Below are positions 5,010 through 14,280 of a stretch of DNA of 64,000 bases, in pieces. The stretch is taken from the NCBI GenBank assembly GCA_965112735.1, contig OZ218964.1, forward strand, positions 1,116,001 to 1,180,000. The letters are read 5' to 3'. The notes under the pieces are model-generated. The model did not search any database and was not told the origin of the DNA. It worked only from the letters and a program-made list of their open reading frames with translations. A program made the translations under genes and the position numbers. The stretch's first letter is position 1. Every line of letters begins with the position of its first letter. This stretch comes from Phaeosaccion multiseriatum (lineage: Eukaryota > Protista > Ochrophyta, other classes).

Positions 5010-6694
5010 ATGTCCACCGCTCCTGCTGGTGCTACCTCTGCTGCCGCTGTCTCTGAGCAGACGTCTGAGACGAAGGACGACATGAAGTCGGGCGTTGAGG
5101 GCATCACGAAGCCGGCGACGACGGTGCTGATCCCAAGTGTAGTGAAAGGATCCCTGTACACCGACACCACCATAAAGGACACAGCGAGCGTGCAAGAGGC
5201 TGTGAAGAAGCATCCGGTCTTTATCCTGTCGAAGGTACTTACCTGCCTCTCTCTCTCTTTCTTTTTCTCTCCCTCTCTCTCACAGTCTCTCCCCCTCTCC
5301 TCTCCCCTCCTTTCTCTCCCTTCCCTTTCTCTCTCCCTGTCATCTCCCTCCCTCCAGACCACCTGTGGTTTCTGTTCCGAGGCGAAGCGCACTTTACTGG
5401 AGGAAGGCTTGAACATCTGTAGTATTGAAGTTGACAAGGTACCTCCCCTCGTAGCGCCATCCAACTCCCTCCTTCTCACCCCGCCTCTGGCCCTTGCAAG
5501 AGACGCCACTGAGGACACAGAGTCTGTGGTGTAGTTTTCTCACCAGCTTTGGCTCTTTCCCACCCCGCCTCTCGCCCCTTTGTGTGCCCCCCCCCCCCCT
5601 CCCTCCAGGATGCGAATGGATCGGCCATTCGCGCTGCAGTTAGCGAGCTGTCCAATAACAGCAATACGGTGCCCCAAATATTTCTAAATGGGTCATCTGT
5701 GGGAGGATGCGACGATCTCAAGGTCCTGCAAGCCTCAGGCGAACTTGCCCCAAAGGTAGAAGCCGCCCTTGCCACACAACGAGCCCAAGCCGGAGTCTCT
5801 GCCGCCGAGGAGGAGGGAGGAGAAGCAGCGCTGACGAGAGGCTCCTCTAGCTCCGGGCCGTCCGCTGCAGGGGTCTTTCCCGGGCCCAGCTCGGCCATGT
5901 ACCCGCTCTTCTTCTCTCCGGACTTTGTGGATAACAGGGCCGTTCGGCTCGGAGGCGGCTTGGTGAGGAGGAAGGAGAAGGATAGGAGGGAGGAGGAGGA
6001 CGAGAAACAAGAGAGAGAAGGAGAGATATAGAGAGAGGGAGAGAAGAGAGGGAGAGAGAGAAAAGGAGAGAGAGAGGGGGGGCTAGACGAGTCTTTTATA
6101 CTTTCTACGCTTGTTGGGTCTATTTACGAGCTCGAATCCCCCCCCCCCCCTCTTGACTCTTGCTTTTTCTCGGCTTGAACTTGGCTTGCCTTGGCTTGCC
6201 TTGGCTTGGCTTGAACTTGACTTGATTCAGACCATGGTCATTGCCATCTTAGGAGTAGTGTTCGCGACGAAGAAGCAGATGATCTGGACGCTGCTGGGGC
6301 TACTGGTGGACTACGCCATGCGCTTTGTGGCAGGAGGAAAGGGCAGCCCCATCGCCTTGTTGGCCGCGCTGCCCTTCTGCCGCTCCGCACCCAACATCAA
6401 GCCTGGGGTCTCCAAGCAGGTACGTGTGTGTGTGTGTGTGTTTGTGTGTGTGTGTTTGCGTGTGTGTGCGTGCGTGTGTGTATGTGTGTATGTGTGTGTG
6501 TGTGCGCGCATGTGTGCGTGTGTGTGCGTGCCTGCGTGCGTGGGGGGTTGATTTTGGTAGCGGAAGGCCGAGCTGGAATAGACCAGCCAGTCGTTTGGGA
6601 GAGGGAGCGAGGCAGGTCAGGTGAAAGATCCTCAGTCAGCGAGGGAGAGCAGGCGGGGGTGGAAGAGAGAGAGAGAAAGGAGGCGAGAAAATCC

Positions 6695-6725
<31 letters not shown>

Positions 6726-8288
6726 CTATTCACTGCCATCCCCTCCCCTCACCATCCACTGCCATCCCCTCCCCCCATCCCCTCCCACCCCCATCCACTG
6801 CCATCCCCTCATCCAGTTCGCCAATCTGTGTGGACTGACTTTCGCAGCACTCGGGTACTCCACCGCCGCAGCGGGGCACTCGACCGTTGCGAGGATATTC
6901 CTCGCGGGTCTGGCAGGGGCGGCCGGCATGCAGGTGGGTAGGGTAGGGTAGGGTAGGGTACGGTAGGGTGGGGTAGGGTAGGGTGGGGTAGGGTAGGGTA
7001 GGGTAGGGTAGGGTAGGGTAGGGTGGGGTAGGGTAGGGTAGGGTGGGGTAGGGTAGGGTGGGGTAGGGTAGGGTAGGGTGGGGTAGGGTATGGGGTAGGG
7101 TAGGGTAGGGTATAGGGTAGGGTAGGGTAGGGTAGGGTAGGGTGGGGTAGGATCGGGTAGGTAGGGTCTAGTGGTAAGGCATTGAGGCAGGGTAGGGTAT
7201 AAGGCAGTGGGCTGTAGGTAGGGTATAGGGTATAAGGTAGTGGGCTGTAGGTAGGGTATAGGGTATAAGGTAGTGGGCTGTAGGTAGGGTATGCAGAGCA
7301 CGTGCCTGCTGACGGTCTACACGTCACGTGCGTCACGTGATCCCCATGACGGGTGGAAGACGAGAAGCCTTCCCTTCGCCCCCCCCCCCTCTCTTGGTAT
7401 GAGAGAGAGAACGCATCCACCATGTGCACCAGCCTCCCTCTTCCTGTGTTGTCGTGATGTTCTCCTCCTCCTCCTCCTCCTCCTCCTCCTCCTCCTCCTC
7501 CTCCTCCTCCTCCTCCTCCTCCTCCTCCTCCTCCTCCTCCTCATCGTCATTATCCTCCTTATCATCCCCCTTCTCCCCCTCCTCCTCTTCCTCCTCCTCC
7601 TCCTCCTCGTCGTCGTCGTCGTGGTGTCCTGACCTGTGCTCAGTCCATTCTTGACTTCTGCGTGGGGTGCGTCATCTTCGGAGGGCTCATTCAGTTCGGA
7701 TTGCTGCCAAAGACCGTCTACAGAAGTTAGTGCCATCGTGCGTGCGTGCATGAGCATCTCCCTCTCTCTCCCTCCCTCTCTCCCTCCCTCCCTAACTCTC
7801 ACTTTCTCTCCCCCCCCCCCCTCTCTCTCACTCTTTCCCTCCCTCTCTCTCCCTCCCTCCCTCCCTCTCTCTCTCTCTTTCCCTCTCCCCCCACCCCTCC
7901 TCTCTCACTCCATCCCTCCCTCTCTCTCCCCGTCTCCCCTTTTCAACCATTCTTCCCCTCACGCACTCACGCCCCCCCCCCACCCCCTCCCTCCTGCTCT
8001 TTGTGCTTTCTTGTATTGTCTCTTTGGCGGTTACGTACCACCACACTCCGTACCATTTCCTTTTTGCCATTTGTGAATATGTAATATGTGCATATGAATC
8101 AAGTGTACATCAACCGCCGCGTGTCCCGCGTCGCCAATTGGAAAGACCAAAACATCAAAGACCCGTCCAAGACGAGCCCTCCCCCCGTGACTCACTGGTC
8201 CACCCGAGGAGTCAGCCCCTCTCCCACCGACCTCTTCATCAAGCCCAGGGACGAGAAGGACAAGTGGCAGGTGCGTGTTGTGTGTGTG

Positions 8289-8361
<73 letters not shown>

Positions 8362-8443
8362 GTGTGTGTGTGCCTGTGCGTGTGTGTGTGTGTATGTGTG
8401 CATGGAGCATGCAGTACACGCATCTTGTCTCTCTGTGTGTGTG

Positions 8444-8528
<85 letters not shown>

Positions 8529-8549
8529 GCCTGCCTGTCTATCAATCAA

Positions 8550-8583
<34 letters not shown>

Positions 8584-10161
8584 AGTCTGTCAGTCTGCCT
8601 GTCTGCCTGTCTGCCTGACTGCCTGCTCACCTTGCCTTGACCCCTCTCGCTCCCCTCCCCCCTCCCCCCTCCCTTCGCTCTCCCCCCTCCACTGTCCCGT
8701 GCCGTGCCCCCCTCCCCCCTCCCCTCCGCCCCCCCCCCCCAGGTGTTCGACCCTGTTCGCTACTGCCACGCGCTCTACTTTGCCTTTCCGCTGTCCCTGA
8801 GCGGCCTTGCCACTGTGCTCAAACTCTTGAATGAATCTCCTCGCTTCAACCTTGGTGACACGGTACGTTAAGGTGGAGGTAGCTGCGGTGGGTGGGAGGG
8901 TGGGAGGGAGGGAGGGAGGGAGGGATGGATGGATGGAGGGAGGGAGGGAGGGAGGGATGGAGGGATGGAGGGATGGAGGGAGAGGGTGAGGGACGGAGGG
9001 ATGGAGGGAGGGAGGAGCCTGTCTGCTCACAGGTTACAGGTTCTGAGTAAGGCAGTGAAAGTAGGGAGGAGGGGGGGGGTCTGAGGGAGGAGCCGCACAG
9101 CACACCACCGAATGATTGCTCTCTCACTTTTCTTTCAATTCTTCTTCCGTGGTGTGTGTATGTATCACCAACAGCCGTGGCAGGTGCTGGCCTGGATCGC
9201 CTGTGCCGTGTTCGCCTTCCTCCTCGCCCTCTACCTCGCCAAGTGTGTGGTGTACCCCAAGAAGGTCCGAAAGGAGTCGGTGGATCGCATACAAGGCCCT
9301 GCCTTAACCCTCTTCGGCATCAACTTCCTCCTCTTCGCCTTCCTCGTCAACGGACAATTCGACCCTAAGGCACCCAACTTCGGAAAGGCGAGTGAAATTA
9401 AAGTACACCCCAACGCCCGACCCATTGACACCCTTGACACCCGTTGACACCCGTTGACGCCCATTGACACCCGTTGACACCTACTGGACACCTGCTGGAC
9501 ACCCATTGATACCTGTTGACACCCATTGACACTCATTGACGCCCACCTCTACACCTCTACCCTTACCCCCTCTCTGACGAAGGACACCCCCCCCCCCCCT
9601 CCCCCCACAGGTTCTATTTTGGATCGGAGCCGTGTGGCAAGGCGCGGTCGGCTCACTTCTCCCCGCCCATTGGGTGTCTCGGCGATGGAGTGAGGAGATG
9701 GTGTCTCCGGGTTGGCTCATCCCCGCTGTAGGGGGCTTTGTGGCGGCCCTCGTTGCCCCCGGCATTGCGAGTGGGTATGAGGAAGTGGGATGGTTCTTCT
9801 TTGGACAGGTGAGGGGTGGGGTAGGGTAGGGTAGGGTAGGGTAGGGAAGGGTGGGGTGGGGTAGGGTAGGGTGGGGTAGGGTAGAGTGGGGTAGGGTAGG
9901 GTAGGGTGGGGTAGGGTAGGGTAGGGTGGGGTGGGGTGGGGTAGGGTAGAGTAGGGTATAGGGTAGGGTGGGGTAGGGTAGGGTAGGGTAGGGTAGGGTA
10001 GGGTAGGGTGGGGTGGGGTGGGGTGGGGTAGGGTATAGGGTAGGGTAGGGTAGCGTAGGGTAGGGTAGGGTAAGGTAGGGTAGGGTAGGGTAGGGGACGG
10101 TGGTGGAGGTGTGGAGGGAACCGCAGGTTGAGGCGTGTGGGCAGGCAGCAGGCAGGCGTAT

Positions 10162-10196
<35 letters not shown>

Positions 10197-10824
10197 TAGA
10201 CAGGATGGCACTGGATGAGAGGCCTTGTCCGTGATGCTTTCACCTCTGCGAAACTGAAACTGAATCGGAAACTGAACCACCTCACCCCGCCCCCCTCCCC
10301 TCCACACCCCGACCCACGCCATCCACTGCCCTCCACCACCATCCACTGCCCATCCACTGCCATATCCCCTTTCTATGGCTTTTCACAGGCCACCCTCATG
10401 TTCCTGGCACTGTGGCCCACAACCTTCTCCAAGGCCATCCTCGATCACCACTCCGACTTCCGCCTGCGCTCCTCGCTCTTCATCTGGTTGGCCTGTCCTG
10501 CGGTGGCCTGTCTGGCCTACGTCAGACTCAACGGTGGAGACTTTGATTGGCTGGCCCGTACGCTCTTTTGGGGCGGGGCTGCCCTTTTTGTGCAGCAAGT
10601 GGTTGCCGTATGGCCATTGAGTTTCTATGATGAGGGCGGCTTTGACATGAGCAGTTGGTACTTCGTCTTCCCGTTGGATGTGTTGGCGGCGGCGTCTGTG
10701 CTCTATGACCAGGCCACGAAAACCCGCGAGTCCAAGGTAAGGAATACGGGCATATGGGCAAGGCATATGGGCAAGGCATATGGCGTGTGTATGTCTGTGT
10801 ATGTGTGTGTGTGCTTGTGTGTGC

Positions 10825-10860
<36 letters not shown>

Positions 10861-11084
10861 CTGTGTACATGCGTATGTGTACGTGTGTGTGTACACGTGT
10901 GTGTATGTGCGTGTGTATGTGCGTGTGTACGTGCGTGTGTGTGCATGTGTGTGACTGTGACGTGTGAACGGGACAAGTGTGCAACTGTTACACGTTTTTG
11001 CTCCCCTCTGCCTCTTCCTCTTCCTCTTCCTGTGATGACGACTGACCTATATGCCTCTACCCTGCCCTGCCCTCACGCACCTCT

Positions 11085-11130
<46 letters not shown>

Positions 11131-11158
11131 CCCCCCCCCCCCTCCCCCCCCTCCCCCT

Positions 11159-11190
<32 letters not shown>

Positions 11191-14100
11191 CCCTCCCCCT
11201 CCCCTCCCCCTCCCCTCCCATACCCCTCCATCCACAGGCCATCTGCCTAATGTTGGTGGGCATTGCTGCCTACACATGTGCCGTCATCTTCCTCCACACC
11301 CTCCTCGCCCTCCTGTCTACAAAGCTCTTTACCCCCCTGGGCAAGTGGTCCATTATGAGTTACATGAAACTGACACACGAGGCCCTTGAAGCGGCGGTTT
11401 CACGCCTCGGCAAGCTTACGGAGCAGCTCGAGCCTTCTTTGGTGAGGGAGGGCGGGAGGGAGGGAGGGAATGAGGGAGGGAGGGAGGGGGGGAGGGAGGG
11501 AGGGAGGGAGGGAAGGAGGGAGGGAATGGCCAGTGGGAGAGAGGGAGAGAGGGAGTGAGGGAGTGAGGAGGGAGTGTCTTGAGGAGTGAGTGCCTTGCCC
11601 TTCACTGCCATCTGCCATCTGCTGCCATCTGCCAATGGATCACATTGATTCGAGTGGTCCTCCTTCTCTTGGCTTGGCTCTTGACTTGGCTCTTGGCTTT
11701 CGGCCACCCCCCCCCCCCCCTCCAACCCCTTTGCTGTTACAGTTACTATTGCTCACGCCCCCCCCCCCCCCTCACGCCCTCCCCCCCTCCCCTCGCGACT
11801 CATCCCTCACCCCCCCACACACCCCTCGCCCCTCGCCCCTCGCCCCTTCCCCTCCGGAACAGGAGCTCAAGGGCAGTGTGGCGTCTCTGACGGCTGCATG
11901 GGGCTCCATGTGTAAGGTGAGTTGGACAGTTGGTTGTACGGCTGTTGCACATGTCGACAATTGTGTCTAGCGGGCCGCCCCTCTCGGGCCGGTCCCTTAT
12001 TGGTTGGGGCTCTAAAGGAACTGGAACTGGAACTGAAACTGAAACTGAAACTCTCCTTTTTACCATTCTGTGTCCTTAAGGTGCACGATGTACACGCCAT
12101 GCATGAGGATGACGTCATCTTCCCCCTTATCGACAGCTTCTTCCCAGGTGTGTGTGTATGTGCGTGTGTGTGTGTGTGTGTGTGTTTGTGTGCCTGTGTG
12201 TGTGTGTTTGTACGTGTGTGTGTATGTGTGTGTGTATGTTTGTGTGTGTGTACGTGTGTATGTGTGTGCGTGTGCGTGTGTATCGGCACTTGGCCGGATG
12301 CTTTCTGAAGAGAGGCGAGGGGGAGGGAGGGAGGGAGGGAGGGAGAGAGGGGGGGAGGGAGGGAGGGAGGGAGGGAAGATTGGACAGAGGGAGGGAGGGA
12401 GGGAGGGAGGGAGGGAGGGAGGGAGGGACAGAGGGAGGGAAGATTGGAGAGAGAGAGGGACGGACAGAGGGAGGAAGGGAGGGAGGGACGGACAGAGGGA
12501 GGGAAGATTGGAGAGAGGGACGGACAGAGGGAGGGAAGATTGGAGAGAGGGACGGACAGAGGGAGGAAGAGGGGGGGGTGGAGAGAGACTCCTAAATCAC
12601 CAAGACAGAAACTGAACCTCTTCCCCTGTCTTTGCATAACATTATATATGTATATACTTCGTATATACTTATTGCATATATTGTTGTACACATAAAAACT
12701 TACTTTAAAGGCCAAAGTAGCCCCTCCGGGCACGAGCACGAGGAGCACGAGAGAGACATGGCAGCGATCACTGAGAAGCTCTCCTCTCTGGGGACACTGA
12801 CCGACGAGGTAAGGGAGGGAAGGAGGGAGGGAGGGAGGGAGGGAGGGAAGGAAGGAGCGAGGGAAGGAAGGAAGGAAGGAGGGAGGGAAGGGAGGGAGAG
12901 AGAGAGGAAGGGAAGGGAGGGGAGGAAGGGAAGGAGTGAGGGAGGGAGGGAGGGAAGGAGGCAGGCAGGGAGGGAGGGAGGCAGGGAGGGAGGGAGGGAG
13001 GGAGGGAGGGAGGGAAGGAGGGAAGGAGGGAGGGAGGGAGGGAGGGAGGCTGGGAGGGAGGGAGGGAGGGAGGGAGGGAGGGAGGAACCCCTTGGCGTTT
13101 TCACACGTGCACTCTTGGCTCTTTTCTGACCACCCCCCCCCCCCCCTCCCTCCTCCCTCCTCCCTCCCCAGGCATCTAGGAAGGCCGCTGTGACGGATGT
13201 GCAGAGGATGGTGCCTCGCTATGGAGCTGCCCTTCTGCAGCACATGAAGGATGAAGAGTTCATGTACGCCACGCCAGTTGTAAGAAAGGTACGTAAGCTG
13301 ACGTACCCTTCCGTTCCTTCCTTCCTCCCTCCTTTCCTTTCCCCCTCTCACCCTCCCTCCCTCTCCCTCTCTCCTACCCCCCTCCCTCCTTCCCTTTCTC
13401 CCTCCCTCCCTCCCTCCCTCCCTCCCTCCCTCCCTCCGTCCCTCCCTCCGTCCCTCCCTCCGTCCCTCCCTCCGTCCCTCCCTCCCTCCCTCCCTCCCTC
13501 CCTCCCTCCCTCCCTCCCTCCCTCCCTCCCTCCCTCCCTCCCTCCCTCCCTCCCTCCCTCCCTCCCTCCCTCCCTCCCTCCCTCCCTCCCTCCCTCCCTC
13601 CCTCCCTCCCTCCCTCCCTCCCTCCCTCCCTCCCTCCCTCCCTCCCTCCCTCCGTCCCTCCCTCCGTCCCTCCCTCCCTCCCTCCCTCCCTCTCTGCCCC
13701 CCACCCCTCTCTCTCCGCTTCCCTGTCCCCTCGCTGCCCTCTCAGTACTTCAACTTGTCTCTGATGAAGGAGGTGCTGCGCAAGACGTGGGCCAACACGC
13801 CCACTCAAGACATGTCCACCTTCATCTGCTGGGTTGTCAACGAGCTCCCCTTCACACGCCAGAAGGTGCGAGGTGTCAGGACAGACAGGAGCCAGAGGTA
13901 TCAGGACGACCGGGTGAAGTATCTTTCTCTTACCCATCTCACTCTGGGTTTTATCTCGTCTCTCTCCTTCTCCTCCTCCTCCTCCTCCTCCTCCTCCTCG
14001 TCGTCGTCTCTCTCCTCCTTCCTCCTCCTCCTCCTCCTCCTCCTCCTCCTCCTCCCCCTCCTCCTCGTCTCTCTCCTCCTCCTCCTCCTCCTCCTCCTCC

Positions 14101-14280
14101 TCCTCCGCCTCGTTGAAGGTGCGTTTTGTCAAAACCTTCTGCTGGGCCATGCCGGAGCGATCCCAGCTCATCGGCCTGTGGCTCTACAGAGGCTGCGACG
14201 ATGTCACGTGGGTGGAGCTCTCTAACGTTATGCCGGAGATTGTCCCACGCGGGCTCCCAGGCTACCGCCGCTACCTCTAG
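5010..14280 (+). CDS. Fusion protein: glutaredoxin + DUF4395-like membrane domain + SLAC1/TehA (TDT) anion channel + hemerythrin-like (HHE) domain, ~971 aa, 18 exons
   Basis: Exons 5010-5234, 5358-5438, 5609-5962, 6231-6419, 6817-6933, 7644-7725, 8104-8270, 8743-8862, 9175-9387, 9611-9808, 10389-10736, 11238-11441, 11863-11916, 12081-12147, 12711-12808, 13172-13288, 13746-13865 and 14119-14280 total 2916 nt with consistent phase and a single stop. Grx: SKTTCGFC, TVPQIF, GGCDD. DUF4395-like: VDNRAVR, DYAMRF..SPI, KQFA..CG, DFCVGC. SLAC1/TehA: [46 protein letters not shown]. Hemerythrin: [29 protein letters not shown]. Confidence 0.85.
6934..7290 (+). repeat. (GGGTA/GGGTG)n pentamer array in an intron, starting at the 5' splice site
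   Basis: Dozens of GGGTA units seen directly after the GTGGGT donor. They degrade into a longer unit near 7190-7290. Confidence 0.95.
9812..10095 (+). repeat. Second (GGGTA/GGGTG)n intronic pentamer array
   Basis: Seen directly after the donor at 9809. Confidence 0.95.
13320..13692 (+). repeat. (CCCT)n tetranucleotide microsatellite in an intron
   Basis: Seen directly. It explains the PPSL/GREG pseudo-ORFs. Confidence 0.95.

Follow-up and report, generated by a model that had tools for sequence, protein, structure and literature searches.

A glutaredoxin-DUF4395-SLAC1-hemerythrin fusion protein with a predicted anion channel in the ochrophyte Phaeosaccion multiseriatum

The stretch of DNA analysed here, referred to below as the window, comprises 64,000 nucleotides (nt) of contig OZ218964.1 from the ochrophyte Phaeosaccion multiseriatum (assembly GCA_965112735.1, positions 1,116,001 to 1,180,000, forward strand). 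On its plus strand, positions 5010-14280 hold 18 exons that join in frame into a coding sequence of 2916 nt, specifying 971 amino acids (aa) with no internal stops. An earlier note on this DNA, made from the letters and a program-made list of open reading frames, had proposed that 18 exons splice into a single frame of about 971 residues missing from that list. Both the in-frame model and alignments with homologues bear this out, and a bacterial-style list of reading frames for the stretch contains no trace of the gene. The locus is very probably one intact nuclear gene for a 971-residue membrane protein built around a SLAC1/TehA-type anion pore, with the phenylalanine F676 in that pore and additional folded modules: a glutaredoxin (Grx) and a DUF4395 membrane domain ahead of the channel, and a hemerythrin-like (Hr) bundle behind it. 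The exons, the residues they encode and the support for each are given below (TM, transmembrane helix; AF2, AlphaFold2 model; A2, an alignment of homologues).

5010-5234, plus strand: exon 1, aa 1-75, which carries the start codon and an N-terminus of low complexity that lacks a signal peptide, and opens Grx with its first helix and strand; from the splice model, aligning with the Grx N-termini of homologues.
5358-5438, plus strand: exon 2, aa 76-102, with the CGFC active site of Grx (C78-C81, 5364-5375); Pfam 23.1 bits, the CxxC column being kept in most homologues.
5609-5962, plus strand: exon 3, aa 103-220, with the remaining half of Grx (TVP at 5666-5674, GGCDD at 5702-5716; Pfam Grx profile 35-59), a linker and the start of DUF4395, whose FxFPxxV(N/D) motif lines up with DUF4395 of eukaryotes and bacteria.
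6231-6419, plus strand: exon 4, aa 221-283, DUF4395 TM1, TM2 and lateral helix; Pfam profile 12-56 and AF2 of a homologue.
6817-6933, plus strand: exon 5, aa 284-322, DUF4395 KQFA motif, TM3 and TM4; Pfam profile 75-111 and alignment.
7644-7725, plus strand: exon 6, aa 323-349 plus 1 base, DUF4395 CxGC motif (CVGC, C328-C331, 7659-7670); Pfam profile 114-128.
8104-8270, plus strand: exon 7, aa 350-405, final DUF4395 helix and linker to the channel; splice model and alignment.
8743-8862, plus strand: exon 8, aa 406-445, SLAC1 TM1; colinear with the SLAC1 profile from position 1 onward in homologues.
9175-9387, plus strand: exon 9, aa 446-516, SLAC1 TM2-3; Pfam SLAC1.
9611-9808, plus strand: exon 10, aa 517-582, SLAC1 TM4-5; Pfam SLAC1.
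10389-10736, plus strand: exon 11, aa 583-698, SLAC1 TM6-9 with the gate phenylalanine F676 (10668-10670) in SWYFVFP; Pfam SLAC1.
11238-11441, plus strand: exon 12, aa 699-766, SLAC1 TM10 followed by the first hemerythrin helix, with H745 (11376-11378), which is the invariant H13 of A2.
11863-11916, plus strand: exon 13, aa 767-784, first part of hemerythrin helix 2; splice model and homologue profile.
12081-12147, plus strand: exon 14, aa 785-806 plus 1 base, helix 2 HxxxE (H789 at 12093-12095, E793 at 12105-12107); alignment and homologue profile.
12711-12808, plus strand: exon 15, aa 807-839, helix 3 with HEHEEHE (H816 at 12737-12739); alignment and homologue profile.
13172-13288, plus strand: exon 16, aa 840-878, helix 4 HxxxE (H863 at 13241-13243, E867 at 13253-13255); alignment and homologue profile, E867 and E868 being the invariant E135 and near-invariant E136 of A2.
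13746-13865, plus strand: exon 17, aa 879-918, start of the conserved helices that extend the hemerythrin module; no Pfam family, within the BRUTUS-like fold match.
14119-14280, plus strand: exon 18, aa 919-971 plus stop, the best-conserved cytosolic stretch (A2 invariants P197, G204, E225, P228 and R229; 47% identity over 65 aa with the diplonemid homologue).

All 17 introns end in AG, and 16 begin with GT. The remaining donor, at 9388, reads AAG/GCGAGT, and intron 9 (9388-9610) is probably spliced as a GC-AG pair. An alternative in-frame GT donor lies 15 nt further 3', at 9403, and would add five residues (ASEIK) within a variable loop; comparison of this junction with the homologue alignment weakly favours the shorter exon 9 made with the GC donor. 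Aligned as a whole with independent homologues of 900-1000 aa, the spliced protein gives single high-scoring segment pairs (HSPs) over residues 48-970, with E values of 1e-124 to 1e-167, a sequence match that is far beyond chance. Single HSPs run, for example, over residues 60-970 against Myrmecia (E 1e-149), over residues 48-970 against a transcript-derived protein of the MMETSP collection, and over residues 133-971 against Ostreobium (E 2e-167). Not one of the 17 splice junctions falls on an insertion or deletion that is family-wide, and the gene model is essentially right, given these end-to-end alignments and the lack of length changes at the junctions. The Grx/DUF4395 boundary lies within exon 3 and the channel/hemerythrin boundary within exon 12, while the exon 7/8 junction, where DUF4395 gives way to the channel, lies within a conserved pre-channel motif. 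The case for a single transcript follows from these three boundaries and from recurrence of the arrangement elsewhere, including in transcript assemblies, and positions 5010-14280 almost certainly constitute one gene.

The introns (5235-14118) are packed with strand-biased microsatellites. Runs of (TAGGG)n occupy introns 5 and 10, (GT)n introns 4, 7 and 14, (CTGT)n intron 7, (CCT)n introns 5 and 17, (GGGA)n introns 12, 14 and 15, and (CCCT)n intron 16. Intron 11 contains a tract of about 150 nt of nearly pure C (about 11087-11240), with a further repeat at 10874-10958. Many of these repeats could form G-quadruplexes or i-motifs.

Domain assignments in the window draw on Pfam scans of single exons, with cut-offs of 22.9 bits for Glutaredoxin, 24.5 for DUF4395 and 27.9 for SLAC1. 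The channel is the most readily recognised part. Exons 9, 10 and 11 score 29.8, 32.2 and 37.5 bits against SLAC1 (PF03595), each above its cut-off, and cover profile positions 35-89, 105-178 and 181-303 in colinear order; homologues that align end to end with the window protein cover positions 1-331. F676, in the SWYFVFP motif of TM9, aligns with F262 of TehA and with the phenylalanine of the F-P motif (TFP) of SLAC1/SLAH, and the column is invariant in 24 members of the family. This residue corresponds to the pore-occluding phenylalanine of TM9, F262 in TehA and F450 in SLAC1. The closest solved relatives of a homologue are plant SLAC1, SLAH1 and SLAH3 (E 2e-17). These alignments point to a ten-helix pore of SLAC1/TehA type, a predicted anion channel.

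Upstream of the pore, Glutaredoxin (PF00462) matches exon 2 at 23.1 bits (profile 7-33) and exon 3 at 18.6 bits (profile 35-59), again colinearly. The signatures of the family are present and align with those of homologues: CGFC, a lysine three residues upstream, the TVP cis-proline loop and GGCDD. Homologues score 33-53 bits on the same Pfam profile, and one of them matches Grx entries of the PDB at E values down to 8e-16. Across most homologues the active site conforms to C-[PGAET]-[FY]-C. Protein P0013 (963 aa, from a JGI metagenome) carries Rdx (PF10262, of the selenoprotein W/T/H type) in place of Grx and has no Pfam hemerythrin match; on these domain assignments it is a natural swap between two thioredoxin-fold redox modules.

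The DUF4395 domain (PF14340) is spread over exons 4, 5 and 6, which score 19.7, 12.1 and 12.7 bits, each below the cut-off and together about 44, at colinear profile positions 12-56, 75-111 and 114-128. Against a DUF4395 profile built from the homologues, which themselves score 48-89 bits on Pfam, residues 196-362 reach 176 bits. The AF2 model of the domain from the Ostreobium homologue has a predicted local distance difference test score (pLDDT) of 91. It is built of a pair of short strands, four long helices, a further helix that lies laterally, and a short one that starts with CxGC. This motif (CVGC in the window, residues 328-331) follows the fourth TM helix, and both of its cysteines are kept without exception in 19 sequences from eukaryotes and 10 from bacteria. 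In the model, the FxFPxxVN strand, the GPPKQFA strand and CxGC would all lie on one side of the membrane, with CxGC at the edge of the membrane, on the side that also holds both termini of the domain; that side is predicted to be the cytosol because the chain runs on into the cytosolic N-terminus of SLAC1. Stand-alone bacterial DUF4395 proteins of about 160 aa occur at more than 586 loci, most of them from Chloroflexota and Actinomycetota. They share the four-helix membrane fold and the FxFPxxVNE, GPPK(Q/R)FAQ and CxGC motifs of the window module but carry a further CxxC some 17 residues beyond CxGC, giving four cysteines that may form a metal site or an internal disulfide relay, whereas the eukaryotic fusions have no second CxxC and instead carry Grx. 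Fusions of Grx or thioredoxin to DUF4395 without a channel also occur. Full-text literature searches found no paper on DUF4395 function.

Downstream of the pore, residues 734-971 match a profile built from homologues only, end to end, at 254 bits. The ligand set H745, H789/E793, H816 and H863/E867 falls in conserved columns with the H-HxxxE-H-HxxxE arrangement, and the module is predicted to hold a di-iron site whose ligand set is complete in the window copy. On the Pfam Hemerythrin profile itself, ten homologues score 26-39 bits (maximum 38.6), six fall below the cut-off and four give no match. The AF2 model of the Ostreobium C-terminal module has a pLDDT of 92 and a predicted template-modelling score of 0.89. 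Its seven best PDB matches are all hemerythrin-like, at Z scores of 13.5-15.8 (PF0695 15.8, four FBXL5 entries 13.8-14.4, NMB1532 14.1 and a Rv2633c homologue 13.5), and generic bundles reach at most 10.9. Searched against Swiss-Prot models, the whole 238-aa Ostreobium module, including the helical extension for which no Pfam family matched, recovers the third Hr region of BRUTUS and two paralogues (template-modelling score 0.66-0.78, E 2e-4). From the letters alone, the earlier note had named an intact dithiol Grx (CGFC, TVP, GGCDD), a TDT-family channel whose SWYFVFP bears the TehA/SLAC1 gate, and a C-terminal four-helix domain with hemerythrin ligands. The Pfam matches, the alignment with TehA F262, the conserved ligand columns and the bundle fold of the homologue model confirm all three. 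The note's DUF4395-like membrane hairpin is upheld in family identity by the profile match and not in shape, the homologue model being a bundle of four TM helices plus short helices.

The window protein belongs to a sizeable family. An exhaustive HMMER search with exon 11 among 1.8 billion cluster representatives returned 82 relatives, many of 800-1024 aa and matched in mid-protein. End-to-end alignments extend to proteins of 800-1015 aa from brown, yellow-green, green and red algae, ichthyosporeans and a diplonemid. Members come from the brown algae Sphacelaria and Ectocarpus, the yellow-green alga Tribonema, the green algae Ostreobium, Myrmecia and Trebouxia, the red alga Porphyridium, the ichthyosporeans Pirum and Creolimax, the filasterean Capsaspora, which has a shorter form, and the diplonemid Namystynia. 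The window's own protein is missing from protein collections, the best identity found being 55% (exon 11). At least 13 homologues show the Pfam order Glutaredoxin-DUF4395-SLAC1-Hemerythrin. Some are transcript-derived, among them those from MMETSP1442 (a 3.4-kb transcript) and from Namystynia (a Trinity contig), and the same gene order also occurs on eukaryotic metagenome contigs. The database entries are unnamed or named automatically; names in use include 'S-type anion channel SLAH3' (Porphyridium) and 'TehA-like permease/glutaredoxin' (JGI). In a maximum-likelihood tree the window protein groups with Tribonema and Sphacelaria at support 100/100, while Ectocarpus and its relatives form a separate second stramenopile clade and greens and holozoans fall in groups of their own. 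The topology suggests that the two stramenopile clades are paralogues, and the family looks old and mainly vertically inherited. Full-text literature searches pairing SLAC1 or TehA with hemerythrin or glutaredoxin found no paper on this architecture, in agreement with the earlier note, which knew of no characterised protein of this kind. The check it had suggested, profile support for the four domains, yields three families on the window exons and all four in homologues. As judged from database sequences, then, the architecture is widespread among eukaryotes and not unique to this genome, with sequences already deposited, and the family is undescribed in the literature searched.

A sensor-gated channel, with redox input through Grx and CxGC and a second input through the di-iron site, is the best-supported proposal for the function of this protein, though about as likely to be wrong as right. 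The Grx-DUF4395 and hemerythrin modules would face the cytosol and take the place of the phosphorylated tails of plant SLAC1. Grx and the CxGC of DUF4395 would exchange a disulfide or glutathione and so report the ratio of reduced to oxidised glutathione (GSH/GSSG) or the H2O2 state, while the hemerythrin di-iron site would report Fe, O2 or NO. From the cytosolic face, both sensors would influence the pore and set its open probability, such that anion efflux would track redox and iron/oxygen status; by analogy with SLAC1/SLAH, the anions would most likely be small ones of the chloride/nitrate type. The substrates of the earlier reading, among them sulfite, nitrite and bicarbonate, are purely speculative candidates. 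Gating by redox, Fe, O2 or NO, metal binding, the thiol relay, the topology and the substrate are all put forward as proposals. The thiol side has the strongest comparative support, CxGC being invariant and a thioredoxin-fold partner, Grx or Rdx, always present in the sequences compared; this partner appears to stand in for the second CxxC of the bacterial proteins. The iron/oxygen side draws on the predicted fold and the ligand set. More tentative, and on the doubtful side, is the suggestion that no ion channel before this one would have been under the direct control of a hemerythrin di-iron centre and of an intramolecular thiol relay from Grx to a membrane CxxC, in an old, kinase-free design conserved in at least four eukaryotic supergroups. 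If true, DUF4395 would gain a first function through the relay, that of a redox-switch module in the membrane, and anion efflux would be coupled to Fe, O2, NO and the glutathione redox state.

Several results count against sensor gating or the model beneath it. The six short hemerythrin exons of the window, scanned singly with the 18-aa exon 13 left out, give no match to Pfam hemerythrin (PF01814). In Sphacelaria (P0001), the closest relative, the hemerythrin ligands are largely replaced, and in Myrmecia (P0065) the first Glu ligand is lost, while the helical scaffold and C-terminal extension are still conserved in both; metal sensing cannot be essential to the core function of the family because the ligands have degenerated in the one and partly in the other. 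The second Grx cysteine is missing in two members, Porphyridium and one other (CPFT, CAYS). Searches of the PDB with the DUF4395 model (Foldseek, and VIA-align wide) returned generic helical bundles only, at Z scores of at most 8.5, and no solved relative. Within up to 8 kb on each side of 80 bacterial DUF4395 loci, there are no SLAC1/TehA, Grx or hemerythrin neighbours, so no functional link is supported outside the fusion. No neighbour is conserved among these loci (the commonest real one, probably an amidase, stands at 10 of the 80), and an operon-based clue to DUF4395 function was rejected on the grounds that the neighbourhoods are uninformative. The structures predicted are those of separate domains of the Ostreobium homologue. 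A search for transcripts from this genome found no RNA run that contains exon 11; searched alone, this exon turned up in four sequencing runs of unspecified type. One of the four, together with three more runs from the same sample, covers 78-86% of the stretch, and these are probably the genome's own DNA reads because the share covered includes the introns. RNA runs contain 6-10% of the sequence words of the whole stretch, a share that probably stems from the intron microsatellites.

The same parts could also serve chemistry on a transported substrate. Grx and CxGC might together reduce reactive oxyanions such as selenite, tellurite, sulfite or arsenate at the expense of GSH, or offer them a site of thiol exchange, with the pore moving substrate or product, so that the redox chemistry would serve transport or detoxification and not regulation. 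The pore family does include TehA, known for tellurite resistance, and the sulfite efflux protein Ssu1. The invariance of CxGC even where Grx is monothiol, the selenoprotein-W-type Rdx in the Grx position of one member, the likeness of solitary bacterial DUF4395, with its two CxxC pairs, to an autonomous redox or metal site, and the dispensability of the hemerythrin ligands in some members all point the same way. The nearest solved relatives, however, are plant SLAC1/SLAH channels, the gating phenylalanine is invariant, a TehA-type gene lies beside bacterial DUF4395 at none of the 80 loci, and DUF4395 offers neither a catalytic precedent nor a detectable fold relative; substrate processing is considered unlikely. 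Alternatively, the CGFC of Grx, with Gly in place of Pro, and CxGC might together ligate an Fe-S cluster or a metal, making the protein, with its hemerythrin module, chiefly a sensor of iron status. Glutaredoxins with CGYC or CSYC active sites, such as poplar GrxC1 and human Grx2, bind [2Fe-2S]; the four-cysteine CxGC...CxxC set of bacterial DUF4395 has spacing typical of metal sites, and FBXL5 and BRUTUS, which the C-terminal module resembles, are iron sensors. Yet the CPFC found in most members disfavours cluster binding and the second position varies (P, G, A, E or T), so that cluster binding cannot be how the family works in general; a metal-bridged sensor is distinctly improbable.

The appended domains might, instead, have mainly structural, assembly or trafficking roles, with little or no signalling and a channel regulated by other means. 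Such a role would accommodate the ligand losses in Sphacelaria and Myrmecia, the lack of a Pfam hemerythrin match in P0001, P0002, P0013 and P0065, and the position of the best-conserved cytosolic stretch in the C-terminal extension, which carries no ligands. It is improbable, given that the window copy retains all Grx and hemerythrin signatures, that CxGC is invariant and that a redox domain persists even when its type changes from Grx to Rdx. Lastly, the gene model might be an artefact, with two or more neighbouring genes joined by eye. The absence of exon 11 from RNA runs and the single non-canonical GC donor could be read in that way, but full-length homologues, transcript assemblies included, align end to end in single HSPs, two of the domain boundaries fall inside exons 3 and 12, and the junctions are free of insertions and deletions. 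An artefact of this kind is highly improbable and already nearly refuted.

SLAC1-family channels are the kinase-gated valves of plant guard cells. A conserved channel with Grx, DUF4395 and hemerythrin domains offers a testable case of anion flux under redox and iron/oxygen control, a new gating logic if the sensor reading holds. The family additionally provides a handle on DUF4395 and a compact, natural sensor-effector fusion whose domains can be mutated one by one. Red, green and brown algae have members, as do unicellular relatives of animals (Capsaspora, Creolimax and Pirum), so that characterising a single one would annotate many genomes.

Each module of the window protein has counterparts in better-known systems. 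Its Grx shares the CxxC, the upstream lysine, TVP and GGxDD with class I dithiol glutaredoxins such as poplar GrxC1, which has CGYC, and human Grx2, but it is tethered covalently to a membrane protein and has the active-site variant CGFC. The proposed membrane partner of this Grx recalls, by analogy, VKOR homologues with thioredoxin-like fusions and DsbB, in which a four-helix membrane bundle carries CxxC at a helix start and works with a thioredoxin-fold partner in the same chain. A link of DUF4395 to VKOR, DsbB, DoxX or similar folds was not demonstrable in the structure searches. The differences from VKOR and DsbB include the absence of any fold or sequence match, the predicted cytosolic position of CxGC and a quinone site that is not evident; the analogy is a lead and carries no claim of membership.

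The C-terminal module finds its closest parallels in FBXL5 and BRUTUS. The Ostreobium model matches the Hr domain of FBXL5 (3u9j, 3v5x-z) at a Z score of 14.4, with a root-mean-square deviation of 2.6 Å over 156 residues, and the third Hr region of BRUTUS/BTS at template-modelling scores of 0.76-0.78 across the whole 238-aa module. A long four-helix bundle and the H-HxxxE-H-HxxxE set are common to these proteins and the window module. In FBXL5 and BRUTUS, the Hr domain governs the stability of an E3 ubiquitin ligase, whereas in the window protein it is joined to a channel, at the final TM helix. F-box/LRR, CHY and RING parts are absent from the window exons in the Pfam scan and from the homologues scanned. 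On its domain content, the window protein is outside the FBXL5 and BRUTUS ligase families, the likeness being limited to the sensor module.

The channel itself compares with plant SLAC1, SLAH1 and SLAH3 (PDB 7wnq, 7en0, 9m7r and 9m7s) and with TehA (3m71), which have the same PF03595 ten-helix pore and the gating phenylalanine in TM9, although the identity of the window pore to the plant pores is low (exon 11, E 4e-6). Regulation is carried by the cytosolic ends in both, with the window protein's share in this likeness being a prediction. The plant channels are gated via kinase phosphorylation of disordered tails, whereas the window protein bears folded Grx-DUF4395 and hemerythrin modules at the corresponding positions.

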